Origin: Thalia democratica
Taxonomy: Eukaryota
Assembly: GCA_965202585.1 (NCBI GenBank)
Contig: OZ241828.1
Location: 56,916,001 to 56,980,000 of the forward strand
Reading direction: 5' to 3'
Length of the DNA stretch: 64,000 bases
The notes under the pieces are model-generated. The model saw nothing but the letters and a program-made list of their open reading frames with translations. It searched no databases and was not told where the DNA came from. The translations under genes were made by a program, and so were the position numbers. This document shows, piece by piece, positions 35,927-64,000 of this stretch (position 1 is the first letter of the stretch; the number at the start of each line of letters is the position of its first letter).

Positions 35927-36066
35927 NNNNNNNNNNNNNNNNNNNNNNNNNNNNNNNNNNNNNNNNNNNNNNNNNNNNNNNNNNNNNNNNNNNNNNNNNN
36001 NNNNNNNNNNNNNNNNNNNNNNNNNNNNNNNNNNNNNNNNNNNNNNNNNNNNNNNNNNNNNNNNNN
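35927..36066. other. Assembly gap (140 N)
   Basis: Run of N. Confidence 1.
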
Positions 36067-37214: not shown

Positions 37215-39390
37215 TATGCTGAAGTGGTACCAATTTACAAGTCTGGTAAAAAAAGTGATGTTAATAACTATAGACCTATTTCTCTTATGTCTCCTTTTTC
37301 AAAAATTTTGAGTCCTTAGTGTGTGAGAGGTTGAATATTTTTTTTTTGTCTAATGATGTTTTGCATAAAAATCAGTATTGTTTTAGGAAAGATAGTACAA
37401 CTGAGCTTGCTGTGAATCAGATTGTGGATGAGTTGATTGAGGCTGGTGAGAAAAAGTTAGTTAATTGTTCTGTTCTTTTAGATTCAGCAAAAGCATTCAA
37501 TACGGTAAATCATGAAATACTCTTGTCAAAATTAAAAGGTTATAAAGTTGAAGGATCTATGTTAAATTTACTACAAAGCTACTTATATAATAGAAGCCAA
37601 TTGACTGTTATCAATAATGTTGTGTCTGAGCGTGAAATTGTGAATGTTGGTATACCGCAAGGTTCTTGTTTGGGTCCTTAATTGTTTCTTGAGTATATAA
37701 ATGATATTTTTCTTCTACTGAGATTAACATGAGATTGTTTGCTGATGATGCCTGCTTAAGCTACCAACATAGTGATCCTGCTTGTGTGAACAGTGTTATT
37801 AATGAAGAACTGAGAAAAGTTGATGTATGGTTGCGTGATAATAAACTTTTTATTAACTATTCTAAAACTAAATTCTTGCTTTTTAACAATACTTCTAAAA
37901 AATGTGATTTTAAAGTAAATATAAATGGATTTGCTCTTGAACAGACTGAAAGTATAAAATATTTAGGTGTAGTTTTGGATGAAAAACTGAATTGGAGGGC
38001 TCACTTAAGATGTCTCAAATCAAATCTGTCTAAAAGTTGTTTTGTGTTGTCAATATTGAGGTACTATTTGGATGTGAGTACACTTAAAATGGTGTATTAT
38101 AGTTTGTTTTATCCGCATATTCAATATTGTATTTCTGCTTGGGGTGGTGCTGCTGAATGTTATTTGAAACAAATTGTTACTATGCAAAAAAGGATAGTGA
38201 GGTATGTTTGTTGTGTGCCTGCTTTGACTCCAACAAACCCACTGTTTGTGAAAACTGGTCTGCTGAAATTGAATGATGTGTATAAATTGCAAGTTTGTAA
38301 ATTGATGCAGAATAGTATGACTGGATTTGATGTTGAGCATAAAAGTTTTACTCTTGCTAGTTCTCTTCACTCACATAATACAAGATTTTCAAAAAAATTT
38401 AACTTCATAACTATAAGACCTAGAACAAGACTTGGCCTAAACTCCATTAGGTATTTGGGTCCAAGGTTTTGGTCTAGTGTCCCAGAAAATTTGAAAAGGT
38501 TAAAAAAAGATAAGTTTAAATGCGGTTATAAAAATTTTCTATAAATTTGCTACAAGAAGTGAAACTTGAGTGCTTATAATCACATGCATGAGTATATTGT
38601 TTTATTGTCTTATTTTTTTGTGCATTTGTGTATAAACTAGATTAATTATATATTTTGTTTTCCTTGTTGTTTTCTGTATAAGTTTAAGTTCAAATATTTT
38701 ATGTTATTTAACTTATTTTTAATATATAAAGGAACATTTCTGTTGAGATTTTTTATTTTTTCTAATACAAGTTTGTTAAGAGAGAAATTATTTGTCAAGT
38801 TTTTGAATATTGATCAAGATTTGTGTTAACTTAATGCTAGCAATAAATTACTTAAGATTTTGTTATAGAAGTTTTTTGTTTTGTAGCTATTGTTTTTAAA
38901 TTACACTGCTTAATGGTATATTGCTGCTTAAATTTTCAATGGCTAATTGTGGAATCACTTGGTGGCAGTGATATCATAATTGGATTGTTGCTATTGTTGT
39001 TTTGTTCAGAACGTCGGAAGCACTTGCTTGGGGATTTGAGCTTCAGGATTTTCCCAAACTTAGTGGTTTTTAGTGTTGAGATTTTAACCTTGTGAGTGTT
39101 TGCCAAATGACTTGTCACTAGGGTTTTTTTCAATAAAGGGTTAGGATTAGTTTTTTATTTTGGTTAGTTAAAAGTTCTACTTTTTATTTATTTATAGATT
39201 TAGTTTTATTTTTTTAATTAAATGGTGAAATTTTTTCTTAGTAAATTTAAAGATAGGACAGGTGGAATAACACGTGATGAGCTCAAACTCACTTGCATGA
39301 CCTTCAGAAAACGTTTATCGTTGTAGAGAGGAGAGTGAGTTAATTCTGATGTTTTTCTACCTTAAAAATAAATAAATAAAATAAATAAAT
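37215..39390 (+). mobile_element. 5'-truncated CR1/L2-group LINE (RT, frameshifted) with 3' UTR and (TAAA)n tail
   Basis: VVPIYKSG..NNYRPISL, LDSAKAFNTVNHEILL, GIPQGSCLGP, LFADD, IKYLGVVLDEKLNW. The tail is AAAATAAATAAATAAA. Confidence 0.93.
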
Positions 39391-45832: not shown

Positions 45833-47338
45833 ATGAAAGACCAAACCCTGAAGTACTGCGGGATTTTCATCAGTGGGGCAGGAGTAACTTGTGGTCTCTA
45901 CTACCTCAGCAAGTGGGCCACATCTTCTCACCAGCAGGTGGCCTGCTACGCCGGGCTCACCAACAACGGTAACACTTGCTACATGAACTCTGTTCTCCAA
46001 TCATTAGCCAGCTGCCCTCATTTTGTTAAGTTTCTCAGGAGCAACAGGGAAAAGGTGGGGGGAGGTGGGAAAATGAGTGAGGTGATCCTAGAAGTGCTGG
46101 ATCAGTTGGAGGAGAAGGGCAATTTGAAGTACTTCAACCCTTGTTGTGTGATGGCAGGTTTGAAGAGAAGAGGGTGGCGCATCAGTGAGGAGGAACACGA
46201 CTCGCACGAGTTCCTGCATGCCCTCACTGCAACTGTGCAAGATGAAAACCACAAGTTTATTTCGTGCCACCTAAAGCCTTCTCTTGCAAATATCAAAAAA
46301 AGTGAAGTTTTAAAAGAACCTTCCAGTCGTGTGAAGTTCAAGCAAGGCGTAAGTCAAGATTTGCGTTTTCTCAAAAACATGTTTCACTTGAACACAGAGC
46401 TGCAGGGCAGGGTGGGTACAAAGCTGACTTGTTCCAAATGCGGCCACCAGAACCCCATCAGGTACGAAGCCTTTCACAGTCTGAGCGTTCCTTTCAGCAA
46501 CTTGGTGTGCAAAAGCAAAATAACCTTGCAAGACTGCCTTGAAAACTATTTCTCTCCGGAGCAACTTGAAGATGTGATCTGTGAACACTGCACAAAAGAG
46601 AGCGGAAAACAGAAAGGTCTCGGAGATTTCAGTGATTCTACGTTTAAAAGTTCCAGAAAACCTTTTCAAACTGACATGTACAGCTTGAATGTTTTAGACA
46701 TGACTTTAAAAGGTGTGAAGGTTGACCGTACTAGCATTAACAATAAGTCATCAAAACCGGTAAAAATTAAAAACAAATTCACCAAAACTTTGTTTTTGGT
46801 TAAAAGCCCAAAAACGTTGTGCATACATCTCCAAAGGTTGACTTGGAGCCAAGGGTATCCGGTAAAGCTTCAAAATCATGTTGACTTCCCTTTGTTTTTG
46901 TATAAAAAAGATTTTTCCAAACACTGGCACTGTCAAAAAGACACGTCGTTGTGTGATGTGACCAACAAAAACAAAATTACAGAAACAAGCATGAAAAATT
47001 ACTTGAAAAAATTGAATTTAGACAAAACAAAAAAAGGACCTAGCAGCAGTTCTTTAGACAGTTTTGTGTCGAAAATCGTCAGCAAAAATCAAAACTTGTT
47101 GAAGCCAACCACCAACCAACGACGTCCCATTTACCAGCTGTGCTCCGTTATAGTCCACCACGGACACGGTCTGAACAACTCCGGACATTTCGTGTGCTAC
47201 AGAAGAGTTTTGAACGATGGCAGAGAGTGTTGGCTGCACATATCTGACACTGAAGTGATAGAGTGCAGTGTCAAAAACGTTTTAAACTCGCAAGCTTACA
47301 TGCTTTTCTATGAAAGATTGAGCAGTAAGGCACTTTGA
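45833..47338 (+). CDS. USP30: Ubiquitin-specific protease 30 (mitochondrial outer-membrane DUB), intronless CDS, 501 aa
   Basis: N-terminal TM, Cys box GLTNNGNTCYMNSVLQ, LCIHLQRLTWS, His box VHHG..NSGHFVCYRR, ISD with the USP30-type Ser, and AYMLFYER. Confidence 0.9.
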   Translation: MKDQTLKYCGIFISGAGVTCGLYYLSKWATSSHQQVACYAGLTNNGNTCYMNSVLQSLASCPHFVKFLRSNREKVGGGGKMSEVILEVLDQLEEKGNLKYFNPCCVMAGLKRRGWRISEEEHDSHEFLHALTATVQDENHKFISCHLKPSLANIKKSEVLKEPSSRVKFKQGVSQDLRFLKNMFHLNTELQGRVGTKLTCSKCGHQNPIRYEAFHSLSVPFSNLVCKSKITLQDCLENYFSPEQLEDVICEHCTKESGKQKGLGDFSDSTFKSSRKPFQTDMYSLNVLDMTLKGVKVDRTSINNKSSKPVKIKNKFTKTLFLVKSPKTLCIHLQRLTWSQGYPVKLQNHVDFPLFLYKKDFSKHWHCQKDTSLCDVTNKNKITETSMKNYLKKLNLDKTKKGPSSSSLDSFVSKIVSKNQNLLKPTTNQRRPIYQLCSVIVHHGHGLNNSGHFVCYRRVLNDGRECWLHISDTEVIECSVKNVLNSQAYMLFYERLSSKAL

Positions 47339-48975
47339 TGTTTTGATTAGTAAATGGGTTTTATAAGTAGAAAATTTGACAATTTTTTAGCCAATTTTGC
47401 TTTTGTTTTCAGCTCAAAGTTAATTAAGCCAAATGTTAAATGTTTAAGTTTCTTAAATGTGCTTCGTATATTACAAAAGAAAGCTGTTTGACTTTTAAAC
47501 TAAACTTTCTTAAGTTTATTACTTTTAAAAAATTCATGTATGAAAACTTTATATATCTTGATATGCAGTTGAATATTATTAAAAAAACAAGTTCCACATC
47601 TAAAAATATATTATGTATTAAGAAATATTTCCAGTACTTTTTGAAACTTTAAAGAGCTTATCTTTAATACGTCTAGTTTGCTTATTATTGTAAACAAAAT
47701 ATGTAAATTTTAATTTACAAAATATGTTCGAGTTTTTTTATAATTTTTTTCAATATAACTTGTATTGTTTTACGTTTATTTATTTTGTAACACTGTGCCA
47801 CTGTTTATTAAATAAATAATAAAGAGCTTAAATTGAAAGTTTCATATATGTAAATTTGTTTCATTCTTCTTATTTTTTAAAAAAATTGTTAAACGAATAC
47901 GTAATTAACCAAGTTAGTTAATTTGAATCTTTAGTTTAAAGATGGTATTTTATTTTGAGAAACATAGACTTAAAATTCTTTCCTAAAATAAAACAAATTT
48001 AAAAATCTCAATAATTCTAGCTGCTAAAGTCAAATTACTTAAACTTTTTAGTTTATAATGTTTTAAAAGTACATATTCGAATTAAAACTTTTGTTTTAGA
48101 CAAGAACAGTGGTGTTCATAATAAAATATAGTCTTATTTAATGAATTATATTTTTACAGTCTATTGTGCACAGAAGTTATTTTCTTGCAATAAACTGTAC
48201 ACAGTTTTTTTAAACCTTCAAAAACCTTTGGTATAGAAATTAATAACATATTGTTGTTATTAAATTATTATTATATTATCTAACAAAAAGTTAATGCTTG
48301 TTTACAAATGTTTTCGTCAATTTAGTTTACTAACATTTACACTAAAAATAAAATTTAAAAAAAAACTAATTTCTTATTTTTGTACAAAGTACTTCCAAAA
48401 CTACAATTTTAAAGTCAAGAAAAACTACTTAATAGTTTGTCATATATTTTAATTGCTACAACAAATCATGTAAAACAATAATGTTTTATAACTAGTGATA
48501 AGTTTAATGACCAAATTAGATTTGTCCTATATCCAAACTTTATAAACTAAGATTATTAAACTCGATTTAAAAAAAAATAATTTAGTCTACTGAGTTTTTT
48601 TTAAAGTTTTAGCAAACTTGTATGTTAAGTATAATTTATTCAACAATTGTCAATTCAAGCTAACGCCAATTCACCTAGAAGGTTCTTCAGAGCTTTTTCA
48701 AATTGAATTTTTTAGTATATGCAAACTTGTATTGTAAAAATATATTTTTTAAGTTTATATTATTTTTATCATAAAAATAATCATTAACTTTATTTAGAAA
48801 ACTCGAAGCAAACACCTTATATCATTAGTTAATTATTTCAGGCAAAAAAAAGTATTTCTGTATAAAAAGTATGCTCTGAGTACGTTAAGAAGCCCTAATG
48901 TTACAATTAACCGTTTAAACACTCAAAATTTAAAACAGATTTTAGCAATTTGAGTTTAAACTGAATGTGGTAAAC

Positions 48976-51355
48976 ATGGAAAGAACAGTCACCGTGGTGG
49001 AAAAGGACCCGATCACCAACCACCTTCGCTTCCACTCCGACAGACTGGAAAACCTTATCCGAGACAATTTCGCCGAAAACCTACTTATAATGCCCATATC
49101 AATAGCAGGTCCATATTCCACTTGGAAGTCGTTTTTCATGAACTTCATGGTGAAGCTGCTGAACGGAACGAACTCTGACGACTGGATCGAAGCAGAGACC
49201 GAAATCGTGAGTTTGAACCTCGACGCGATGACTATCGGAAGTGGGGAATCCCCTATTGTAGGTTGCTGCATGAAAGTGTACCACAAAATATTCCGCCTCA
49301 AAGATGAGAACAACGAAGAAGTGGGAGTGATGCTCATCGACTGCAAAGGGTTCCACGGCCGAGACCTGACGCTTTCCGACGCGGCAAAAATTTTCACGTT
49401 GAGCAGTTTCGTGAGCAGCCTACAAATTTTCAATTTGAGCAAAATGATAAGAGCCGAGGACCTACACTTTCTCGATTTTGTTTGCTCTTGCAGCAAGCTG
49501 ATTTCAGATGCCAGGCCTTTCAGCGACCTCGGTTTGTTAATAAGAGATTACAGCGGTACCGACAATCAAGATTTCAACGGAAACACTAACGGAACGTCTT
49601 ATTTTAGGTCATGGCAAAGACTACCAAACACTGACCTCGGATCATTGCAAAATCGTCTTACTAGTTGTTTTGAAAATGTAAACTGCTTTTCGTTGCCCAG
49701 TCCTGGAAATCTAGTTAGTATTGGTAGACCCAATGATGTTTCTATAGCTCAAATAGATCACAGATTTAAAGAAAATGTTCAAAGTTACGTCGCGAACATT
49801 TGCAGAAACTTGAAAGTTAAACAGGTTGATGGGCACAGCATAAACTGTTCGCAGTTACTACAACGTTTTCAAGACAAGTTTGATGAGGTAAGCAATCAAA
49901 GTATCTTTGATTTAAAACTCTGGAAGCATTTTGTGTCACATGATTACTATGAAGAAAAAGCTTTGAAGCTTTACAAGTTGTTTTGTGACCAAATTGGCAC
50001 TAGTTTAAATGGTGAACATTCTGATTATGAAGCTTGTAGGCAAGATAAACTACAGCAATTTGACAATTTAAAGGACTTAGGTTGTATTGAAATAAGAGAA
50101 AAGTGCAGAAAAAAAGACTATGACTAGATGAAGACATGACAATTAAAATTGATGAAACGAAAAAGATTGTGCTTGTTATTGAAAAAGTAAAAAGCACTAA
50201 GATAAACTGGAATAATCACCTTAGAAGCTTTTATACTTTTGCTATACCATTTTTAGTAGTAGTTTTACTTGTTTTGTCAAATGCTGCGTTTAATACAAGC
50301 AGTTTAAAACAAAATGAAAATTTTGATGTTTCAGAAGTGGAGGTGGTAAACTTTTTCAAAACAACAGTAGAAGATTGCTTTGGAATTTACAAAGAAGAGC
50401 TAAACTCTAAAAAGCATATGATTAATAGTATCGATGATTTGCATAAAAGCTATGTAAAAGCAATGGACAATGCACTGACAAGGTTAAATGATGAGGTTGC
50501 TACTTTCAAGACAGATATGAGTTTTAACAAAATGTCTTTATCTTCAAAAGAATTAGTTAACAGAAACAACTCAAAGTACAAATCGAAGCTTAAAGAAAAA
50601 CTTTATAGCTTTTACGTCACTTTGAAAAATCAGTTTGCTGAAGAGTTTGAAAGATCAGAAAAAGAAACAAATCTTATTGAAGACTTTTACAAAGCAGAGT
50701 TTTAAGAGTTAACGATGAAAAATTTCCAAATTTTATTCAAAACAATCCATCATCTGATGAACTAGTTTCGTTTTTAAGAAAATTAAAAGATAGTCTTTTA
50801 ACAAAATACGAATATTCAGTACTTGTAGGTAAATTAGCTTCAAACTTTAAATTTAAGCTTCTAAACCCAAATGAAAATCATGTCAAAAATGAAATAAAAA
50901 TCAGTTATACCAAAGAATGAACGAAAACAACCTAAATGCAAACAATGAAAATGAAATTTCTCCCATTAAAACTCGAGTAAATAACTCCTTTGAACTAAAA
51001 GTTATAAAAATCGTTCTGTTTAATCTAATTGCTTACTTGTACTGGATTATTTGTTGTTTATTAAGCGGATATTTTTTGTATAATTTAACAATTTCCAAAC
51101 GTTTTAAAGTTAAATATTCAATTATTATCTTTTTCTTTGCAATAACAATCTGTACATCTTTTATATTGTCCAATTCTATGTGTACTCTTATACCTTCGAT
51201 ACTGCTCATGTTGTGTTTACAACTGCATCAATTAGTAATTCTAAATATTAATAATTCTAATTAATAAATACGGTAATTCTACGTTACATGATTATTTTCT
51301 GATACTTTGGTGTTTATACAGTGTTATTCGTATATGTGTCTAAATTTTGCAGTTA
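48976..51355 (+). pseudogene. Atlastin/GBP-related GTPase gene, copy 1 (P-loop Gly->Trp, several frameshifts)
   Basis: ISIAGPYSTWKSFFMNF, LIDCKG, LLIRDY. Split into frames 48976-50127, 50136-50705 and 50917-51264, colinear with copies 2 and 3. Confidence 0.88.
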
Positions 51356-52489
51356 GCAAACTAAATAAAAGATTAAATAAACAATTTCAACTCTTTCTTT
51401 TTAAACAATAAGAAGTTGAAAACTGCTTGAGAAAAGACAAATTTTAAAAATAGACTGGCTTTAATTTTATTTTAAAGCAATTTGTTTATAAAGTAATATT
51501 TTAAAATATCAATGCACATTTTTAAATACTTTTTGAAAACTGTTATTTATTTAAATTGAACAAAAAACATCAGATAAACTTACAATCATAATTTTACTAA
51601 CTATCAAGCAAAGGCTTCCAAAAACAATGTAAAATGAAATAATGAACTTAATGTTGTTGTTTTTGTCGAAGCTGTTTTTTTCTTTAAACAACAATTATCT
51701 ATAATAATATTTAAAATTTCTTAGTAAGCAACATTTTTATGTGCAGTTTACTAACTTATTTACTTGAAGAGATCGCAATTTTTTGTCACCGAAACCTGGT
51801 TGTAAATAAAATATTTAATTTTCACAACTTTATTTGAATTAAGATTTAAAATTTAAGTAAAATAAATAAAATATTATCTTAATGACATAAAAAATGCATT
51901 GTAAAGTTTAAGAATACTAAACAGCTTACTTTTCTTAGTATCTTTTAATAAACTAAAACTACTTTAAAACCATTTTATTAAAAAGTTTCATTTGTTTTAA
52001 AATAATTCAGAAATAAAAGTACGTTAATTTTAAAACGTAATTTAAAAGGTATATACAATGTAAGTAAGCTAACAAGATACTTATATAGATTAGATTAATA
52101 TTTGTTTTTATACATTAGATTACAAAAATACATAAATCTATATACTATCTAGTATTTATCATAGTATTTCATACTGATATAAGCCAGTATTATTTTAAAG
52201 AACATTTTAAATGAATAATTTAATAAAAAACATTTTGTAGGCATTTAGGAAATCAAAAAATTAAAATTTTTTAACCAAAGTTTACATTTGCTTATTTAAT
52301 TTTTTTTTGTTAAAATGTTATACTGTTTTTGGTTGTATTTTCAATTGTTTATATCTAATAAAAAAACTTTTTAAGTAAACAGCTAAAAAATTCATTTAAG
52401 TTTAATAGAGTTTAGCAAGCTTTAAAAGTTTGCAATTTTTAAAAGTAAACAGTGGGCAGCGAATTCTCGGAAAAATTTAAAAAAGGTTT

Positions 52490-52990
52490 CTTAAATATGC
52501 TTCGTATATCGCAAAAGAAAGCTGTTTGACTTTTAAACTAAACTTTCTCAAGTTTTTTTATAAAACTTTTTTATTATTTTTAATAAATTCTTTTATGAAA
52601 ACTTTGTATATCTTGATATGCAGTTGAATAGTTATAAAAGTAAAAAAATTCCACATCTAAAAATATATTATGTATTATGAAATACTCCCAGTACTTTTTG
52701 AAACTTTAAAGAGCTTACTTTATTACGTCTAGTTTGGTTGTTATTGTAAACAAAATATGTATATTTTTATTTACAAAATATGTTTAAGATTTTTTATAAT
52801 TTTTCCATTGTTATCTGTATCATTTTACGTTTATCTATTTTGTAACACTGTGCCACTATTTGCTAAATAAATAAAATACAGCTTAAATTGAAAGTTTTAT
52901 CTATGGAAATTTGTTTCATTCTTCATATTTTTTTACTTAGTTGTTAAACAAATGCGTAATTAATCAAACCAGTTAACTTAAATGTTTAGT
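52490..52990. repeat. Duplicate of the USP30 3' flank (47430-47960)
   Basis: TTCTTAAATxTGCTTCGTATAT..CAAAAGAAAGCTGTTTGAC... is colinear for ~500 bp in both places. Confidence 0.88.
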
Positions 52991-54386
52991 AAAAAGATGG
53001 CAAATGTTTAGCATCTTAATTTTTGTGCATTTAGATATGCCTGACGTGTTAACTTATTTAAAAAAACAGGTCTCTTACAATATCTCGTTTTTTTGTTCAA
53101 AAAGTAAAGTTAAATAAAAATATTTCTTATGATTAATTTTCTCAGGCAAATATACTTTTTTTTTACCTTTTTGATTGAATTTTCTATGGTGTACTGTCAA
53201 CTTGTAGGGTTTTTCAAAATATAACTTGTTTCTGTATTTTATTTTGAAAAAACCACTATTGTTACATTTTGTGTAAAAAGAACATGTTGTAAGTTGTTTA
53301 AAGAAACATAATAATTTTTACTTGTACTATGCAAATAACATGACTTTATATATAAGATTAATTTTGTAATATTTGAATGTTTAAAAATGCTTGGCATAAC
53401 TTTACCTCTTTGTATAAGAAGTTTAGTTATAATTAACTAAAAGTTTTTTTTTTATGTTTCCAACTCATTTAGTTTATTTAAACAAATTTCAGAAAGACAC
53501 AACAAGCTACTCTTATATTTTTTTTTTTAGTTTATGGCAAGTTTTGTTTATAAATAACTCTCAAGCTAACGTTTTTCAAAGTTAAAAACAAAAAGTTATA
53601 CTTCTTGAAACAATTTTTTATTTTATCTAATTCACCACTGTTTTCAGATTTTATTTATAATTTAAACTACTGTTTAATAGTTGTGTATTTAATTCAAGTT
53701 TTGAAATTTTATCATATACTAAGGCTGACTTGGTCTAATTTATATTGGTTAAAGAAAGTCTAACTTTTAAAAACACTATAAGGAGCTAACAAAAGGTGCT
53801 TAACATTTGTAGCATTTGTTCTTTGTTAAAAAAAAATAATATAGACTTGATTTAATAAAACTGTGCAAAAAAACTAAAAACTAGTTTTAATTAACTAAAT
53901 ATGTAACAAAAATCATGTAATAAGATAAATATAAACAATAAAATTATAAACTAAAGGTTACATAAGTATTTATACATAGTAAATTAATATGTATACACCT
54001 AATATAAAGTTTTTAATGTGTGGGTAATACCCAGTTTAGTTAAACTTCATTTTGTTTTGAAATCATGGTTACTTTTTAAAAAATCGTTACTTTAAGACAA
54101 TAAAACAAAATATACTATATACAGAATTGAAGCTTAACTTTAAATATGCTTCTTTATCTCAAAGCTAGTAAGCAATATAATTTTAATCTTCGATGTAATC
54201 TTTTTAAAATAATAGTATTTAAAACTTTTTTAAATACAAAAGTGATGTTTTAATGTTCTTTATACAATATGGTCTCTACACTTTAAATCTATATAAAACT
54301 TATTTTAATAAAATTTGTACAGACAAAAAGGACATTTTAAAGTTCTTTTAACTAACGTACTTTAATTTAAAAATAAATTGTACTTA

Positions 54387-54627
54387 GACATTTTCGTTAC
54401 ATTTTTTCGTTCGAATTCGTAATGTTTTGCAATTAATGTTTTGCCGAAATGTTTTAAATTCATAGGTATTTAAATACCCATGAGTTTAAAACATTTCGGC
54501 TGCAAAATAAATTTCGTATACAAAAAAAATTATGCAATGGAAGCATGTGGCTCAACATATGTATTACAGCAATGTTAATAAATTGTATTTTGAGTCGAAT
54601 TCGAACGAAAAAATGTAACGAAAATGT
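54387..54627. mobile_element. Palindromic MITE
   Basis: GACATTTTCGTTACATTTTTTCGTTCGAATTCG / CGAATTCGAACGAAAAATGTAACGAAAATGTC. Confidence 0.75.
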
Positions 54628-55871
54628 CAAAAAAGGCAACAAATAATAAATATATTTAAAAATTATAAAAGAAATAGTAATATGTATGTGTATTATTTTT
54701 TTTTTATCCTCAATTAGCTTTTTTAGCACGTCGCCATTCAACATTTTTACTAGTACATTTACATCGGTGTTTTTCAAACCCTGCATTTTGGAAATAAACT
54801 TTTGTTAAACTAATGGTTAGTTTAAATATTATGTTAGAAAATATTTTTAATTGATAATTTATTAATATCAATCAGTAGTTCTCTTTATATGCACCCATGC
54901 ACAGTAGTGTGCATAAAATCTATATTGCTGTGCACAGAAAATTTGCTACGGTAAAAAAATATTACTATTAACGTTTGTCTTTTCTTTCTGTTACAAAAAG
55001 CATATTTAATCCACAAACTAACAATTAACAATATTATAAATTATCAAAAAAAATAGAATAAATGTCTTTTGAAGTGATAAGTACCTTTTTAGTCCAATAT
55101 ATACAGCTTTTAAAAAAATTGAGAGGCTCTTATCTGGATTAAAGAAGGAACTCAAAATTCTATATTTGACTTTCAGAAATCTGGTATACGCCACTTTTTA
55201 ACTAAAGGCATCGTATAAAGCTTTATTTTTTAAATCTATATTTTTAATAATTAATCCACGACATCTTATGCACAACAGTCTAAGTACAGCTGTTCCTAAA
55301 AAAATATTTTCTCAAGATAACATAAAAACATTTTTTTACCAAACGGGAACTAACTCGTTCTAAGGCCGCATCAGTTGAACTTTTTTCACGTCCGGACTAT
55401 AAAATTAAAACCCTATACAATTAAATATTAACTTATTTTGAAGAGCATCAATAATGTTTTATTTTGGTTTAGAAAAATACTTTTATATAGGTCATAATAG
55501 TGTGACTTGTATAAGAAAACGTTTCATTAGTACTTACAACTTGTTTGTTTGTTGTGTTTCTTCATCTAATAAATCAAATTTTATAGTTATAATAAACCTA
55601 ATGACAAATTCTACTATAAATAGTTTAAATATAACAATATAATAATAATACACAATAAAAGATATTCTAACGATAATACAGTTACTGTCAAGTAAATTGT
55701 TTACATCAACACTTGTTAAAATTTTTAAGTTACTTGTTATTTTTGATACAAGTAAATGACTTTTAATTTATAATTTATCTTAGTTAGTTTCTTATATATG
55801 GACTTGTAAACTAATAAAGTGTGTAGTGTACATTGCTTAAATATACTTAAACTGATTACTATCATCTAAAG

Positions 55872-56117
55872 CAGGGTTTAACAAACCTTTTTTCAAAGGG
55901 CCCTGTTTAAAGAAATTAAAAAAGCTATGGCCCCTTTCGATAAGATTTCTCAAAAAACTAACATTAAAACCGCCTAAGACCTTTTTTTTGCTCTTTATCA
56001 TCAACTCAAGAATATGTAGTGTAAGTTTCAATTTATGACCTCATGGTTCCCCTGTGGCCCCTTTGCTGCTCATTGCCTCCTAAATTTCTGTCATTGCCCA
56101 AAGTTTGGGAAACCCTA
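55872..56117. mobile_element. Old hAT MITE
   Basis: CAGGGTTTAACAAAC / GTTTGGGAAACCCTA. The 8-bp flanks ATCTAAAG and ATATAGAG match at 6 of 8 positions. Confidence 0.65.
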
Positions 56118-58531
56118 ATATAGAGTCGACTTATATATTATATAAATGTTATGAGTATTGGTATACACACATAATCAGAATAAATTTTATATTTTTATAT
56201 ATTTAAATCGTTTATAGTTCATTGTGTACTTAAAAACACAATACTAAATTTTACTTTAGTATTTTTAAAAAACAGCTAGTTAAATTTTAGTTTTAAACTC
56301 AAAAATATATACATTAAATTCAATTTAAAACTATATTTTAAGATATTTAAGACCACGTTTTACTTTTATACCACTCCAACGGTAGAGCCTCTGATATGTC
56401 GTCATTTTCAGTAGCTCAGCAGAAAGCTCTTTTGACGATCTTAGACACGGCGTAGTACGTAGGGCAATGAATAAAATGTAAGCTTTTGTGCAATAATCAC
56501 ATTTAATTAATAAAATAGAGAAACATGCACTAGTACAGTAAGCTGAACACAGAACGCCATATATGAAAAATCACTACTTATCAGAAGTTTACCTGTACAG
56601 CTTGTTTAATGCTAAAAAAACAAGCACTATGTGTTTTACTGTTTGTGGCTTAAGTAATAAACTCCAAAAAAAATTGTAGTAGTAGCGTAAACAAGCATTG
56701 AAGTTTAGCAAGTAACTAGTTTGCGTAGAATTCTTTCGTTAGTAGTTTTTTATTTAAGTTAAGTAGATGTTTTTGAAAAAAAATGATTGTTCTTTATTAA
56801 AAAATTATTTCTAAAATATAAACCTGGTTAATCAAAGTCAAGCTACGTTATAAAGTTTAAGTAACAACTAATTCGTACTTGTTTAAGTAAACAGTTTAGT
56901 ATTTGTTTTCATGCAATCATTAACTTTTGTTTGCGATAATTTCGTGTTGCATTTTACTATCAGCTTACAAAGTTAACTACTTTCCTAGCTTGTGAAAAAT
57001 TATACAGATTTAAATGCTTTTCTTGCAAACAATTTGTTTCAGTTTTTTTTTTTTGATCAGATAGACTTAAATAAATTTTAAGCTTTATAATTCAGCAAAA
57101 GTTATACGAAAGTAGAGTAAGTTTTTTTTAACAAAAGTTTTTAAGTTTTTTTAATAAGTAAAGTATTTTACTTGTTTTACTATGTTTTAAGTCAAAATAT
57201 TTTAGTTTTTTTTTAAGTAAAATAAATTTGATAATTAGTAAAACAACTAAAACGAAAAGATAGAAACTTTAATATCTTGCATACTTATAAATATCCTCTC
57301 ATAATTATTCTAAAATCAGACAAGTTTTCAATTCAACCTGCAACGGACAATTAAAAAAAAAAAACTAAAGTCATTAAGGAAATTGCAAGAAATGTTGTTA
57401 TTAATAAAATTAAAATAAACCAAAAATCAAGTTACTAAGTACTATTTGTTCTAAAAAATAATTGTGGTTGTAAGAATTAGAACTATTGTCAAAGAAAGAA
57501 GCTAGCTTAAAATGTTTATAAAGAGCTGCTCTTAAGATTTTAAAAAGTTTTACTTTTAAGCCAACTGGTTTAAAAGTATAATGCTTGTTATCAAATTAAT
57601 TTATCAAATTAGTGGTTTTAATTGTCTATTAAATTTAAATAACTTCGTTGAATTATCTACTTCAAATGTTATATTTCATTTGAAATCTAAACCTTAGGCT
57701 TTTTGATCAAAAACATCGTAAAATTATTTTAGAATAAATTTCTGGAACTTCTTAACTTAAATAGTACTGCTTTTCCAATCCTTAAAAGTTTTGTTTACCT
57801 TGTTTATAAAACATTTTATTTTGAAAAAAAACTAAAACTTTAACTAAAATTTTCTTTCGGAAAACTAAACGAATTTTAAAAACTCAATGATTGTAATACT
57901 TTTACTCTAACTACATAACTTTTAATTTTATTATGCTTCAAAAGTATACAATCAAAAACTTATACTTTTTATTGTAGACAAGAAAAAAGGTCTTTAAGGC
58001 GTGCATATATGTACGGAAATTATTTTATAAAATTTTTTGTTGTTTAGTTTTAGATTTATATGTTTTATTGTCGGTAATGCACAGAAACTGTTCTGCAGTA
58101 TTAAACTGTACTCAGATTTTTTAAAATATAACAATATGATAATGTTTTATAATAAGTAACAAGTTTAAAGAACAAATGAGATTTGTCCCATATTTAAACT
58201 TTATAAACTAAGATTATTTCAGTTTACATATAAAAGTTAATTCTAAAACTTTTTGCAAAACTGTTTTGTAAAACTATATTGTATAAGGTTTAAGTTTGTG
58301 TATCATAAAAGTAAATGTTTACTTAACTATTACACTCTTTGCCTAAAATTTATATTATTGATTATTTATAGCGGGTGAAAGGTATTGATTTCTATAATAA
58401 AAAAATGTTTTGAATATGCTGACAAAAACCAGCTTTAATGTTACAATTTACAGTTTAAATGTCCAAAATGTTAACATTAGAAAATTTAAAACAGATTCTA
58501 GCAACTTTAATTTAAACTAAAAGTAGTAAAC

Positions 58532-60706
58532 ATGGAAAGAACAGTCACCGTGGTGGAAAAGGACCCGATCACCAACCACCTTCGCTTCCACCCCGCCAGA
58601 CTGGAAAACCTCATCCGGGACAATTTCGCAGAAAATCTGCCCGTCATGCCCATATCAATAGCAGGTCAATATTCCACTGGAAAGTCGTTTTTTATGAACT
58701 TCATGGTGAAGCTGCTAAACGGAACGAACACTGACGACTGGATCGAAGCAGAGAGTGTGAGTTTGAACCTCGACGCAATGACTATCGGAAGTGGGGATTC
58801 CCCTAATGTAGGATGCTGCATGAAGGTGTACCACAAAATATTCCGCCTCAAAGATGAGAACAACGAAGAAGTGGGAGTGATGCTCATCGACTGCAAAGGG
58901 TTCCACGGCCGAGACCTGACGCTTTCCGACGCGGCAAAAATTTTCACTCTGAGCAGTTTCGTGAGCGGTTTGCAAATCTACAACTTGGAGAAACGAATAA
59001 GAGCTGAGGACCTGCACTTTCTCGATCTTGTTTGCACTTGTAGCAAGCTTGTTTCAGATGCCAGGCCTTTCAGCGACCTCGGTTTGTTAATCAGAGACTA
59101 CAGCAATGCAAGCGACCTAAACTTCAACGGAGATGTAGAAGGAAGGTTTTATTGGGGATCGTGGCTGAGGCGATCACAAAGCAATGACTTTGGTTCGTTG
59201 CAAAATCGTCTTAATAGCTATTTTGAGAGCGTAAATTGTTTTGCGTTTCCCAGTCCTGGAAATCTAGTTAGTATTGGTAGACCCAATGATGTTTCTATAG
59301 CTCAAATAGATCACAAATTTAAAGAAAATGTTCAAAGTTACGTCGCGAACATTTGCAGAAATTTGAAAGCTAAACAGGTCGATGGGCACAGCCTAAATTG
59401 TTCGCAGTTACTACAACGTTTTCAAGACAAATTTGATGAAATAAACAGTCAAAGTATCTTTAATTTAAAACTCTGGAAGCATTCAGTGTCACGTGACTAC
59501 TATGAAGAAAGAGCTTTGAAACTTTACAAGTTGTTTTGCGACCAAATTGGCACTAGTTTAGGTGGTGATTCTGATTATGAAGCTTGTAGACAAGATAAAT
59601 TACAGCAATTTGACAACTTAAAGGACTTAGGTTGTATTGAAATAAGAGAAAAGTGCAGAAAAAAGCTAGATGAAGACATGACAACTAAAACTGATGAAAC
59701 AAAAAAAATTGCGCTTGATTTTAAAAGAATAAAAAGTACCAACAACAACTCGAACAATTACTTAAGAAGCTATTTTACTTCTAATAAAACATTTGTAATA
59801 GTAGTTTTACTTATTTTATCAAATACTGCGCTTAATACAAGCAATTCAAAAGTGAATGAAAATTTTGAAGTTTCAGATGTTGAGGTAGAAAACTTTTTTA
59901 AAACAGCAGTAGAAGATTGCTTTGGCATTTACAAAGAAGAGTTAAACTCTAAAAAGTATAAAATTATAAGTTCTGATCATTTACATGAAGTAGCTTTAAA
60001 AGCAATGGACAATGCACTGACAAGGTTTAATGATGATGTTACTACTTTCAAGACAGATATGAACATTAACAAAATGTCTTTATCTTTAAAAGAATTAGTT
60101 TACAGAAACAACACAAAGTACAAGTCGAAGCTTAAAGAAAAACTTTATAGCTTTTACGTTACTTTAAAACATCAGTTTGCTGAAGAGTTTGAAAGATCAG
60201 AGAAAGAAACAAATCTTATTAAAAACTTTTACAGAGCAAAAGCAATAGAAGTTTTAAGAATTTACGATGAAAAAATAGCAGATTTTATTCAATACAAGCC
60301 ATCAAATGATGAACTAGTTTCGTTTTCAAAAAAATTAAAAGACACACTTTTAACTAAATACAAAGATACACAATTCGTAGATAAAGTATCTTCGATTTTT
60401 AAATTTAAACTTTTAAAACCAAATGAAAGTCGAGTAAAAAACGAAATATTTAATCAGTTATATCAAAGAACGAACGAAAACAACTTAAATGCAAACAATG
60501 AAGAAGAAAGTTCTCACTTTAAATCTACAATAGAAAACTTCTCAAAAATTATTGAACACGTGCACTTTTATACAGTGATAAATGGTCTGTTAACTCTAGT
60601 TAACTACTTGTACTGGAGTTGTTGTTCAGTAGTAAGCATACATTTTTTTCGTTATCTATTCTCCGAAAGCTTCAAAATTAAATTTTCATTCAAAACTTTT
60701 TCTTAG
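58532..60706 (+). CDS. Atlastin/GBP-related membrane GTPase, copy 2 (724 aa; last TM segments shifted into 60727-60963 by a 1-nt deletion)
   Basis: SIAGQYSTGKSFFMNF (G1), LIDCKG (G3), LQIYNL, LLIRDY (G4) and FAFPSPG, as in the atlastin/GBP family. Intronless. Confidence 0.88.
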   Translation: MERTVTVVEKDPITNHLRFHPARLENLIRDNFAENLPVMPISIAGQYSTGKSFFMNFMVKLLNGTNTDDWIEAESVSLNLDAMTIGSGDSPNVGCCMKVYHKIFRLKDENNEEVGVMLIDCKGFHGRDLTLSDAAKIFTLSSFVSGLQIYNLEKRIRAEDLHFLDLVCTCSKLVSDARPFSDLGLLIRDYSNASDLNFNGDVEGRFYWGSWLRRSQSNDFGSLQNRLNSYFESVNCFAFPSPGNLVSIGRPNDVSIAQIDHKFKENVQSYVANICRNLKAKQVDGHSLNCSQLLQRFQDKFDEINSQSIFNLKLWKHSVSRDYYEERALKLYKLFCDQIGTSLGGDSDYEACRQDKLQQFDNLKDLGCIEIREKCRKKLDEDMTTKTDETKKIALDFKRIKSTNNNSNNYLRSYFTSNKTFVIVVLLILSNTALNTSNSKVNENFEVSDVEVENFFKTAVEDCFGIYKEELNSKKYKIISSDHLHEVALKAMDNALTRFNDDVTTFKTDMNINKMSLSLKELVYRNNTKYKSKLKEKLYSFYVTLKHQFAEEFERSEKETNLIKNFYRAKAIEVLRIYDEKIADFIQYKPSNDELVSFSKKLKDTLLTKYKDTQFVDKVSSIFKFKLLKPNESRVKNEIFNQLYQRTNENNLNANNEEESSHFKSTIENFSKIIEHVHFYTVINGLLTLVNYLYWSCCSVVSIHFFRYLFSESFKIKFSFKTFS

Positions 60707-61704
60707 CATTAACAATATGTACATCTTTGTATATTATCCAACTATATGTGTACTCTTACACCCTTGATGCTGCTCATGTTGTGTTTATGCCTGCAACAAT
60801 TGCTTTTAATCTAAAATACATTGTTGGGTTTATGTTTGCAACACTTGCGGGTAAAATAAAAACTGTGATGTTTGAAATTACGGTGTTTTATTATTTGATG
60901 ATATTTTGGGCTCTGTACAGTGTTGTTCGTACACTTACCTACTTCTTGCAGTTAATGTTTTAAGTTAAAGATTAGAAATACTTCTTTAAACTAAATTATT
61001 AACTTTTTTATTATATCGAATTAAAAAAGAAGTTAAAAACTGTTTGAAAAACGTAAAAGTTAAAAAAATGCTGATTATAATTTTGAGTTGTAGTAGCCAA
61101 ATGTTTGTAAAGTGTTATATTAAAATATTTCAGATACTTTTTATTACGCATATTTTTGACAATTGTTCATTTATTAATTTTTAATAAAACAACAAAAGAA
61201 CTTGCAATTCATAATTCTACTTACTACCAAGCAATATTTTCCAAAGTTAAAAAATAACTCAAAATAAAAAATTTCAAATGAATGTTCCTGTTTTTGCAGA
61301 GGCTATTATTTTGCTCAAAAATACTTTCAAACTGTTCAAAAAAAATATTTTTCAGATTAAAACTTAGTTGTATTTTTGTACTAAAAAACTATTAAAACTT
61401 GATAAGTTAGGTGAAAAAATAAAATGATATTTATATAAAAAAGAAAATACTTTATAAAGTTTTTTTTTATCATCTGTTTTTAGACAATTTTAAAAAGTAA
61501 TTTTTAAATGTATGTATGTCCTAAAAGTTTTAGAACAACCAAACAAACATGTTTGTTTAAGGTTTGAATCGTTAGAAAGATATACAAAACATCTATATAC
61601 AAGCTTTAACAAAACAAGTCACAGCTAATATATTTAAAATTACCAATACTGCGTATATCTAATACAGATTTTGACTAATTAGATTTAAACTAAATGTAGT
61701 AAAC

Positions 61705-64000
61705 ATGGAAAGAACAGTCACCGTGGTGTGGAAAAGGACCCGATCACCAACCACCTTCGCTTCCACCCCGCTAGACTGGAAAACCTTATCCGAGACAATT
61801 TCGCCGAAAACCTACTTATAATGCCCATATCAATAGCAGGTCAATATTCCACTGGGAAGTCGTTTTTCATAAACTTCATGGTGAAGCTGCTGAACGGAAC
61901 GAACTCTGACGACTGGATTGAAGCAGAGAGCGAAAGTGTGAGTTTGAACCTCGACGCGATGACTATCGGAAATGGGGATTTCCCTAATGTAGGATGCTAC
62001 ATGAAGGTGTACCACAAAATATTCCGCCTCAAAGATGAGAACAACGAAGAAGTGGGAGTGATGCTCATCGACTGCAAAGGGTTCCACGGCCGAGACCTGA
62101 CGCTTTCCGACGCGGCAAAAATTTTCACTCTGAGCAGTTTCGTGAGCGGTTTGCAAATCTACAACTTGGAGAAACGAATAAGAGCCGAGGACCTGCACTT
62201 TCTCGATCTTGTTTGCACTTGTAGCAAGCTTGTTTCAGATACCAAGCCTTTCAGCGACCTCGGTTTGTTAATAAGAGATTACAACAATGCAAGCGACCTA
62301 AACTTCAACGGAGATGTAGAAGGAAGGTTTTATTGGGGATCGTGGCTGAGGCGATCACAAAGCAATGACCTCGGATCAATACAAAATCGTCTTGCCAGTT
62401 GTTTTGAGAGTGTAAATTGTTTTTCGTTTCCCAGTCCTGGAAACCTGATAAGTAGTAGGAGAACAAACGATGCCTTTACAGCTCAAGTAGATCAAAGATT
62501 TAAAGAAAAAGTTCAAAGTTACGTCGCGAACATTTGCAGAAACTTGAAAGCTAAACAGGTCGATAGACACAGCATAAACTGTTCGCAGTTACTACAACGT
62601 TTTCAAGAAAAATTTGATGAGGTAAGCAATCAAAGTATCTTTGATTTAAAACTCTGGAAGCATTCTGTGTCACATGATTACTATGAAGAAAAAGCTTTTA
62701 AACTTTACAAGTTGTTTTGCGACCAAATTGGCACTAGTTTAGGTGGTGAACATTCTGATTATGAAGCTTGTAGGCAAGATAAACTACAGCAATTTGACAA
62801 TTTAAAGGACTTAGGTTGTATTGAAATAAGAGAAAAGTGCAGAAAAAAGCTAGATGAAGACATGACAATTAAAATTGATGAAACGAAAAAGATTGTGCTT
62901 GTTATTGAAAAAGTAAAAAGCACAAAGATAAACTGGAATAATCACCTTAGAAGCTTTTATACTTTTGCTAAACCATTTTTAGTAGTAGTTTTACTTGTTT
63001 TGTCAAATGCTGCGCTTAATACAAGCAGTTTAAAACAAAATGAAAATTTTGAAGTTTCAGAAGTGGAGGTGGTAAACTTTTTCAAAACAACAGTAGAAGA
63101 TTGCTTTGGCATTTACAAAGAAGAGTTAAACTCTAAAAAGTATAAAATTAAAAGTTCTGATCATTTACATGAAGTAGCTTTAAAAGCAATGGACAATGCA
63201 CTGACAAGGTTTAATGATGAGCTTGCTACTTTCAAGACAGATATGAGTATTAACAAAATATCTTTATCTTCAAAAGAATTAGTTAACAGAAACAACACAA
63301 AGTACAAGTCGAAGCTTAAAGAAAAACTTTATAGCTTTTACGTCACTTTGAAAAACCAGTTTGCTGAAGAGTTTGAACTATCAGAAAAAGAAACAAATCT
63401 TATTGAAAACTTTTACAAAGCAAGAGCAAATGAAGTTTTAAGAGTTTACGATGAAAAAATTGCAGATTTTATTCAAAACAAGCCATCAACTGATGAACTA
63501 GTTTCGTTTTTAATAAAATTAAAAGATAGTCTTTTAACAAAATACAAAGATTCAGTACTTGTAGGTAAATTAGCTTCGAACTTTGAATTTAAGCTTCTAA
63601 ACCCAAATGAAAATCAAGTCAAAAATGAATTAAAAAATCAATTATACCAAAGGATGAACGAAAAATACCTAAATGCAAACAATTTAGATGAAAGTTCTCA
63701 CTTTAAATCTAAAACAGAAAACTTCTCAGAAGTTATTGAACACGGGTACTTTTATCCAGTAAAAAACGTTCTGTTTACTCTAGTTATTTACTTGTACTGG
63801 ATTTTTTGTTGTTCAACAAGTGGATGTGTTTTGTATGATTTAATAATTTTAAAGTTTTATAAAGTTAAATATTCAATTAGTATCTTTTTCTTTGCAATAA
63901 CAATCTGTACATCTTTGTATATTATCCAACTATATGTGTACACTTATACCCTTGATGCTTCTCATGTTGTGTTCACAACAACAATTGCTTATGGTACCAA
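61705..64000 (+). CDS. Atlastin/GBP-related membrane GTPase, copy 3 (2-nt insertion after codon 8, otherwise open to the window end)
   Basis: ATG at 61705 has the same context as copies 1 and 2. GTGGTGTGG replaces GTGGTGG. The corrected frame has no stop through 64000 and runs into the multi-TM tail. Confidence 0.85.

Follow-up and report, generated by a model that had tools for sequence, protein, structure and literature searches.

The last 15 kb (48976–64000) of a 64,000-nucleotide stretch of the Thalia democratica genome (assembly GCA_965202585.1, contig OZ241828.1, positions 56,916,001 to 56,980,000 of the forward strand; the whole stretch is hereafter called the window) contains a tandem array of three genes related to atlastin. 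Atlastins are the textbook endoplasmic reticulum (ER) fusogens, and their plan, consisting of a G domain, one three-helix bundle (3HB), a transmembrane (TM) hairpin, and an amphipathic tail, is regarded as invariant among animals. The reading that we favor, with slightly better than even confidence, is that the window holds a tandem, gene-converting array of an atlastin-derived family with five TM helices, a lumenal rod, and a GTP-binding head that is most likely not a fusogen. If the rod is lumenal, no earlier case of a dynamin-superfamily protein that folds a domain on the opposite side of its membrane would exist. Copies 2 and 3 follow the layout proposed in a preliminary description of the stretch, in which a G domain is succeeded by bundle 1, a hydrophobic stretch, two helical modules, and about four tail helices.

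A tandem array of three intronless copies

A tblastn search with P0001, an intact 801-amino-acid (aa) relative, as the query returned exactly three matches, all on the + strand (48976–50905, 58532–60655, and 61728–63959). Each copy is one intronless gene of approximately 800 aa, and a three-way DNA alignment of the copies shows 84–90% identity. The array noted in the preliminary description is confirmed. The GC content across these 15 kb is 21–35%. The copies (c1–c3) and the frame-break site in c2 are located as follows.

48976–51400 (+): copy 1 (c1), a pseudogene readable only across three frames
58532–60963 (+): copy 2 (c2), a 724-aa open reading frame (ORF) to 60706 that continues in the 60727–60963 frame
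60693 (+): c2 frame-break site, with one base fewer than c1 and c3
61705–64000 (+): copy 3 (c3), uninterrupted between 61728 and the edge of the window, the last ~45 codons lying outside

Relative to c2 and c3, c1 carries indels of +8 bp at 50115, −10 bp at 50696, −1 bp at 50896, and −1 bp at 51161, and its P-loop reads GPYSTWKS, with a Gly replaced by Trp. As judged from the sequence, c1 is a dead pseudogene. c2 aligns with P0001 at 57% identity and 99% coverage. In c3 as assembled here, a 2-bp insertion is located after codon 8 (about 61726–61729) and the rest is open to the window end; the array runs past position 64000.

The identity among the copies is mosaic, in that the nearest pair changes between 150-bp stretches. 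In alignment columns 300–450, c2 and c3 are 100% identical to each other and 95% identical to c1, while in columns 1200–1350, c1 and c3 share 98% identity versus 78–79% to c2. c1 and c3 are still 97–99% identical in some 150-bp stretches. This mosaic pattern points to sequence exchange by gene conversion in which the dead c1 takes part, and the alignment indicates that the conversion is ongoing.

An atlastin-type head with an altered catalytic site

The N-terminal region comprises the G domain and the first bundle, which together are denoted as the head.

58532–59431 (+): c2 G domain, atlastin type (Pfam, ATL1 match, Foldseek)
58661–58687 (+): c2 P-loop, AGQYSTGKS
59444–59761 (+): c2 bundle 1, atlastin-like three-helix middle domain (AlphaFold2 (AF2), Foldseek, hhalign)

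The only Pfam match of c2 is PF02263 (GBP; E 1.5e-22, aa 32–281). Among PDB sequences, atlastin-1 ranks highest (1e-31, aa 24–298), followed by atlastin-3 (2e-30) and Drosophila atlastin (9e-27). RNF112 (E 2.7e-14; the entry LOC432253/9jju was identified as RNF112 via the PDB titles) and GBP1 (E 0.19) are weaker matches. The AF2 model of P0001, built with a 73-row alignment including 54 atlastin-like proteins from an exhaustive hidden Markov model search, has a mean predicted local distance difference test score (pLDDT) of 77.8, mostly above 90 in the G domain. A Foldseek search with this model matched ATL1 residues 1–446 (E 4e-24, TMt 0.65–0.70), and the ATL1 G domain alone reached a TMt of 0.88. 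By these sequence and structure matches, the domain first described as atlastin/GBP-like is closer to atlastin, and the head is of the atlastin type, not the GBP type. In the P0001 model, the helices of bundle 1 span residues 313–345, 354–369, and 377–442, and this bundle matches the 3HB profile of the 54 atlastin-like proteins in hhalign (92.7%, E 4e-7). As in atlastin, the GBP-type large G domain is followed directly by the 3HB and, at an equal distance, by a hydrophobic helix. Also as in atlastin, a signal peptide is absent. Since the head carries nucleotide-binding motifs and is not preceded by a signal peptide, the head, including bundle 1, must be cytosolic.

A motif table of the family members and the 54 atlastin-like sequences showed that the P-loop (GxxxxGK[ST], as GKS or GKT), DxxG (DCKG or DCQG), and RD (LIRD) motifs are kept, with WKS in c1. 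The Arg finger of ATL1 is R77 in GAFRKGKS; this position is occupied by Arg in most of the 54 atlastin-like sequences but by Asp, Ser, Cys, or Gly in all six family members having the region. Switch I of atlastin reads R-x-T-x-G-I-W, in which Thr is replaced by Gly in all three window copies and P0002 and is retained in P0001 and P0012. The Gly that follows this Thr is changed to Cys in every member. Atlastin depends on both R77 and switch I to couple dimerization to hydrolysis. Together with this biochemistry, the altered residues suggest GTP binding with slow or no hydrolysis. The motifs imply that the head should still bind GTP with guanine specificity, and it is most likely a slow or non-hydrolyzing GTP-binding module rather than a fusogen.

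A hydrophobic segment at the position of the first atlastin TM helix

Downstream of bundle 1, the copies contain an internal hydrophobic segment, denoted as the putative TM1.

59789–59833 (+): c2 putative TM1, aa 420–434 (hydropathy)
62973–63017 (+): c3 putative TM1 (hydropathy)

The Kyte-Doolittle (KD) maxima of the segment over 19 residues are 2.33 in P0001, 1.91 in c3, and 1.43 in c2. Every member possesses an unbroken run of 9–13 aliphatic residues here, and a single run of at least nine such residues occurs among the 23,827 residues of the soluble parts of the atlastin-like set. Measured from one reference column within helix 3 of the 3HB, the segment begins after 30–34 residues; in the atlastin-like proteins for which a TM could be detected (32), the first TM begins at a median of 30.5 residues from that column. 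In the P0001 model, the third helix of bundle 1 continues straight into the segment, as in atlastin. The net charge is +3 to +8 in the 25 residues before the segment and −2 to −5 in the 25 residues after it, with one exception. The segment evolves fast (dN/dS, or ω, of ~1) yet stays hydrophobic.

The spacing, hydropathy, charge flip, and rarity of the run favor a true span in the N-in/C-out orientation, and the segment is probably transmembrane. The membrane crossing proposed in the preliminary description is thus retained as probable on account of its TM1-like spacing, aliphatic run, and positive-inside flanks, while the short core of c2, weighed below, counts against it.

Two further three-helix bundles form a predicted rod

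The middle region between the putative TM1 and the tail is predicted to fold into two additional bundles.

59876–60178 (+): c2 bundle 2 (AF2, VIA, hhalign)
60191–60499 (+): c2 bundle 3, sharing a long helix with bundle 2 (AF2, VIA, hhalign)

When c2 residues 435–675 were modeled alone with an 8-row family alignment, AF2 yielded a pLDDT of 81.2 and a predicted TM-score (pTM) of 0.64. The model consists of helices 15–38, 47–75, 83–152, 158–177, and 198–222, arranged as two three-helix bundles that share one 70-residue helix (83–152), of which bundle 3 uses the second half, and that would form a rod of roughly 10 nm. This model, together with weak in-register profile matches, agrees with the earlier proposal that the later segments are bundles of the size of the atlastin 3HB.

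Foldseek returned nothing below E 0.001 for the rod, with spectrin-repeat pairs as the top, non-significant matches. In a Foldseek-independent VIA scan of 48,161 chains, a tool for which helical bundles of any kind may reach Z values of up to about 13, bundle 2 aligned with the ATL1 3HB (residues 345–433; Z 10.6, rmsd 3.4, 86 aligned) at rank 2, tied with ribosome-recycling-factor bundles, and with the RNF112 3HB (Z 9.3), while bundle 3 aligned with the Drosophila atlastin 3HB (residues 323–409; Z 8.1, rmsd 2.2, 84 aligned). In hhalign, the atlastin 3HB profile matched bundle 2 over 76 columns covering all three helices (E 2.3e-4, 44%) and bundle 3 over the first two helices (E 2e-3, 13%). The whole rod aligned in register with the last two bundles (652–870) of P0014, a soluble atlastin-like protein (194 columns, E 1.6e-4, 51%). 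Direct profile matches among the three bundles are weak (B–C, E 0.002 and 14%; A–C, 0.15; A–B, 0.35) and were less informative than those to the atlastin 3HB profile. These models and profiles suggest that bundles 2 and 3 likely descend from the atlastin 3HB. Pfam gave no match in the C-terminal half or the tail, and none in the middle region at E values up to 1. Spectrin-repeat rods also join two three-helix bundles via one continuous helix (VIA Z 8.9 over 200 residues), but the middle region has no sequence or Pfam match to them, and its profile points to the atlastin 3HB.

The hydrophobic tail and the membrane topology

The C-terminal tail of c2 was delineated by a KD scan and AF2.

60560–60960 (+): c2 hydrophobic tail, approximately four helices, interrupted at 60693

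In P0001, the AF2 model and hydropathy place the tail helices at residues 685–719, 723–745, 751–768, and 775–800, whereupon the protein ends. Likewise, the c2 tail and P0152, a relative represented by its C-terminal half, terminate inside the final hydrophobic helix or immediately behind it. The tail thus contains four helices versus one in atlastin and lacks the C-terminal amphipathic helix. In addition, the two helices of the atlastin hairpin are closely spaced, whereas the second TM of the family follows the first by approximately 250 residues, past the two extra bundles. Lys and Arg are abundant in the loops that follow the first and third tail helices. This agrees with five TMs, a cytosolic G domain, and a lumenal rod, and contradicts a cytosolic rod.

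According to the five-TM model, the first hydrophobic helix would cross the membrane N-in/C-out, the rod would lie within the lumen of the ER or in a space of equivalent topology, and the tail would complete a five-TM, positive-inside topology. The head would bind GTP without efficient hydrolysis. Residing in the ER, the protein could tether or scaffold endomembranes or act as a non-cycling partner of canonical atlastin, and the lumenal ~10-nm rod may serve as a spacer or an interaction surface. We regard the lumenal placement of bundles 2 and 3 as probable on balance. The complete picture of a five-pass atlastin derivative, in which copies of the stalk bundle moved to the lumen to form the ~10-nm rod while the cytosolic head binds GTP but is catalytically crippled, is offered as a tentative model that is somewhat less likely than not. 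If true, nucleotide switching in the cytosol would be linked across the bilayer to a structural or recognition module; no dynamin-superfamily member is known to be built in this way. A lumenal rod would also make the family a candidate ER-lumen spacer or sensor and a test case for a non-cycling atlastin head.

Several observations weigh against this reading. The c2 hydrophobic core comprises only 9–10 residues plus SNTAL, and its KD maximum falls below the usual 1.6. The rod is highly charged, like cytosolic stalks, and contains one conserved Cys and 2–4 N-x-S/T sequons against approximately 3.4 expected. The Z values of 8–11 lie within the range of generic helical bundles, and the profile probabilities of bundles 2 and 3 are weak. 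Nucleotide binding and function are read from motifs only, and all three window copies are frame-broken in this assembly. Read as lumenal signatures, however, sequon density, sequon conservation, and the Cys count pointed in neither direction, and the sequon located directly after the hydrophobic segment in most members is too near the membrane to weigh much.

The short c2 core, the single Cys, the lack of a sequon excess, and the cytosol-like composition of the rod would be explained by an all-cytosolic, long-stalk atlastin with a four-TM tail anchor, whose internal run is buried or enters the cytosolic leaflet without crossing the bilayer. In that case, the family would simply be a membrane-anchored version of its long-stalk paralogues. 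Indeed, its nearest relatives by both tree and profile are the soluble rods P0014 and P0024, whose corresponding connecting helix carries charges, and an even number of tail TMs is self-consistent with such an anchor. Nevertheless, we consider this alternative unlikely, because it would violate the positive-inside rule by making the Lys/Arg-rich loops between tail helices 1 and 2 and between helices 3 and 4 lumenal. The reversal of charge around the internal segment, as expected of a true N-in/C-out span, the spacing equal to that of atlastin TM1, and the conservation of the aliphatic run in every member also speak against a cytosolic rod.

Alleles, transcripts, and selection

Read evidence was drawn from the assembled Logan contigs of four public runs placed on 58400–64000. 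An extra G behind position 60693 is present at 97/192 depth, or about half, in run X1 and at 63/66 in run X3. This base joins the two c2 frames into a protein with the family-typical tail, indicating that an intact c2 allele exists. The break at 60693 is an allele or an assembly error. It had been considered as proof of pseudogenization, a view rejected in light of the extra-G allele in two runs. The X1 and X3 DNA contigs stop exactly at 61725 and 61728, i.e., at the c3 insertion.

The metatranscriptomic RNA libraries X6 and X7 yielded contigs on the ORFs but none on the spacer 60831–61765, which is covered by the DNA runs. This distribution argues for transcription of family members. The RNA contigs are collinear with the genome, revealing no introns, and are 93–99% alike, possibly originating from paralogues or other individuals. 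They start at 58535, near the c2 ATG. Approximately 48 nucleotides 5′ of the ATG (48928–48975, 58484–58531, and 61657–61704) are conserved among the copies, ending in GTAG|TAAAC before the ATG in c2 and c3, with GTGG as the c1 counterpart of GTAG. Tunicates use spliced leaders, and this conserved stretch could be a candidate trans-splice acceptor.

Intact relatives are found outside the window. P0001 is an uninterrupted ORF on a separate 3.6-kb ENA metagenome contig, and P0152 is an intact C-terminal half, including the natural end, on a 1.2-kb JGI contig. In the comparison of c2 with c3 (Nei-Gojobori; dS 0.23), dN/dS rises from 0.22 in the G domain to 0.36 in bundle 1 and 0.57 in the middle region. 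Comparison with P0001 gives values of 0.07–0.085 for the G domain and 0.40–0.44 for the middle region. With ω of 0.35–0.45, the rod is under moderate purifying selection, while the tail is relaxed (~0.7–1.15). A sliding dN/dS analysis for positive selection in the rod showed only noisy single 40-codon windows near 1. The family shows that an atlastin-type head can outlast the loss of its catalytic Arg while under strong purifying selection.

The frame breaks, at least one per window copy in this assembly, invite the explanation that the cluster is decaying and functionless, with the constraint left over from a recently active ancestor. The clearly dead c1, a related contig (L002) split into three ORFs, and the relaxed tail are in accordance with this idea. 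However, the low G-domain ω of c2 and c3 at their dS of 0.23 indicates selection since the two copies arose by duplication, two runs contain an allele free of the c2 break, RNA-library contigs map to the ORFs only, and P0001 and P0152 are intact. A cluster made up solely of pseudogenes is therefore improbable.

Relatives and origin of the family

Word-index searches of a 5.8-billion-protein index, which are too insensitive to find atlastins, identified only P0001 as a close full-length relative of the whole c2 and only P0152 for the C-terminal half. An exhaustive profile search retrieved 1286 proteins at E values up to 1e-3; among the best 150 of these, the C-terminal half was matched only by short fragments belonging to the same family (P0006, P0011, P0013, P0019, and P0068). 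A metagenome locus scan with the family alignment gave 204 pattern matches, none of which was confirmed.

The profile list also contains soluble atlastin-like proteins of marine metagenomic origin with a repeated 3HB, namely P0014 (886 aa), P0024 (786 aa), and P0042 (608 aa), as well as the long multi-repeat protein P0021. P0014, P0024, and P0042 combine an atlastin head with tandem 3HBs, as the family does, and P0024 shares its Arg-less P-loop (YSTGKS). They differ in having no hydrophobic segments and more bundles, and P0014 keeps the Arg finger and the switch-I Thr. The existence of these proteins means that duplication of the stalk as such is not unique. Together, these proteins and the family show the 3HB to be a duplicable module.

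In a quick maximum-likelihood tree of the G domain and bundle 1 (62 rows, LG+G4, unrooted; composition bias was flagged in some rows), the family forms one clade (Shimodaira–Hasegawa-like approximate likelihood ratio test, SH-aLRT, 100) with a stem of 1.12 substitutions per site and groups with P0014, P0024, and P0031 at SH-aLRT 94. The soluble multi-bundle paralogues thus appear to be the nearest relatives. We lean, by a small degree, toward a family that is specific to the pelagic tunicate lineage and derived from atlastin.

Similarities to two other GTPase groups were also evaluated. RNF112/ZNF179 (PDB 9jju–9jjx) shares an atlastin-like G domain and 3HB (Foldseek E 4e-19) but is more distant in sequence than atlastin and carries a RING finger before the G domain; the family ORF starts approximately 20 aa ahead of the first G-domain strand and has no Pfam RING match, and membership was rejected on that ground. 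GBP1–7 share the G-domain family PF02263 and expansion as a tandem cluster, but they possess a long α7–13 helical domain, a CaaX anchor or none, and no TM helices. Membership among the GBPs was rejected owing to the poor GBP1 match and the TM helices of the family.

The layout appears to be undescribed. A literature search on atlastin with tunicates, expansions, and RNF112/GBP phylogeny found nothing relevant. In regard to the novelty claimed in the preliminary description, this result and the lack of Pfam matches in the C-terminal half speak for it, while the repetition of the 3HB is already known from P0014, P0024, and P0042.

A divergent member is present at 92–2171 of L002 (ENA contig k119_868839) as three consecutive ORFs of 98, 265, and 303 aa, with a very basic middle region (net +27). 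Either indels in the assembly or a further pseudogene would account for the split. In other organisms, the predicted proteins P0003, P0009, P0007, and P0008 carry two or three successive, complete G domains of the atlastin-like type, probably representing tandem atlastin-like genes merged by gene callers. This suggests that tandem arrays of atlastin paralogues occur elsewhere too.

A proposed receptor role

The preliminary description had further suggested that the family could be receptors with an immune or recognition function. In this scenario, proteins at the cell surface or in endomembranes would use bundles 2 and 3, exposed by the likely N-in/C-out TM1, as a ligand-binding ectodomain coupled to the cytosolic GTPase switch; GBPs are immune GTPases, and tandem expansion, gene conversion, and pseudogenization constitute a birth-and-death pattern. 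This pattern of the array is the sole basis of the immune idea. The role is doubtful, since the moderate constraint on the rod comes with no positive-selection signal, disulfide and glycan signatures are missing from it (a single Cys and no sequon enrichment), and atlastin-type signal anchors normally confer ER residence.

Neighboring features

Directly upstream of the array, at 45833–47338 (+), lies an intronless gene that encodes a ubiquitin C-terminal hydrolase of 501 aa (Pfam UCH, E 5e-39); the product has a hydrophobic N-terminus and a layout resembling USP30. Its 3′ flank (47448–47945) is duplicated approximately 5 kb downstream (52486–53000) at 85% identity, between c1 and c2, pointing to a larger segmental duplication unit; tblastn revealed no second UCH copy. 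The AT-rich spacer between c1 and c2 also contains short inverted repeats or a palindrome at 54384–54631, of which 54443–54500 is self-complementary at 93%.

Farther upstream, a 592-aa ORF at 8937–10715 (−) matches Pfam Pkinase (E 2e-23) and thus contains a protein kinase domain. A 271-aa ORF at 37729–38544 (+), near a run of N at 35927–36066, resembles reverse transcriptase only weakly (RVT_1 at E 1.6e-5, which falls short of the gathering score) and is probably a retroelement remnant.

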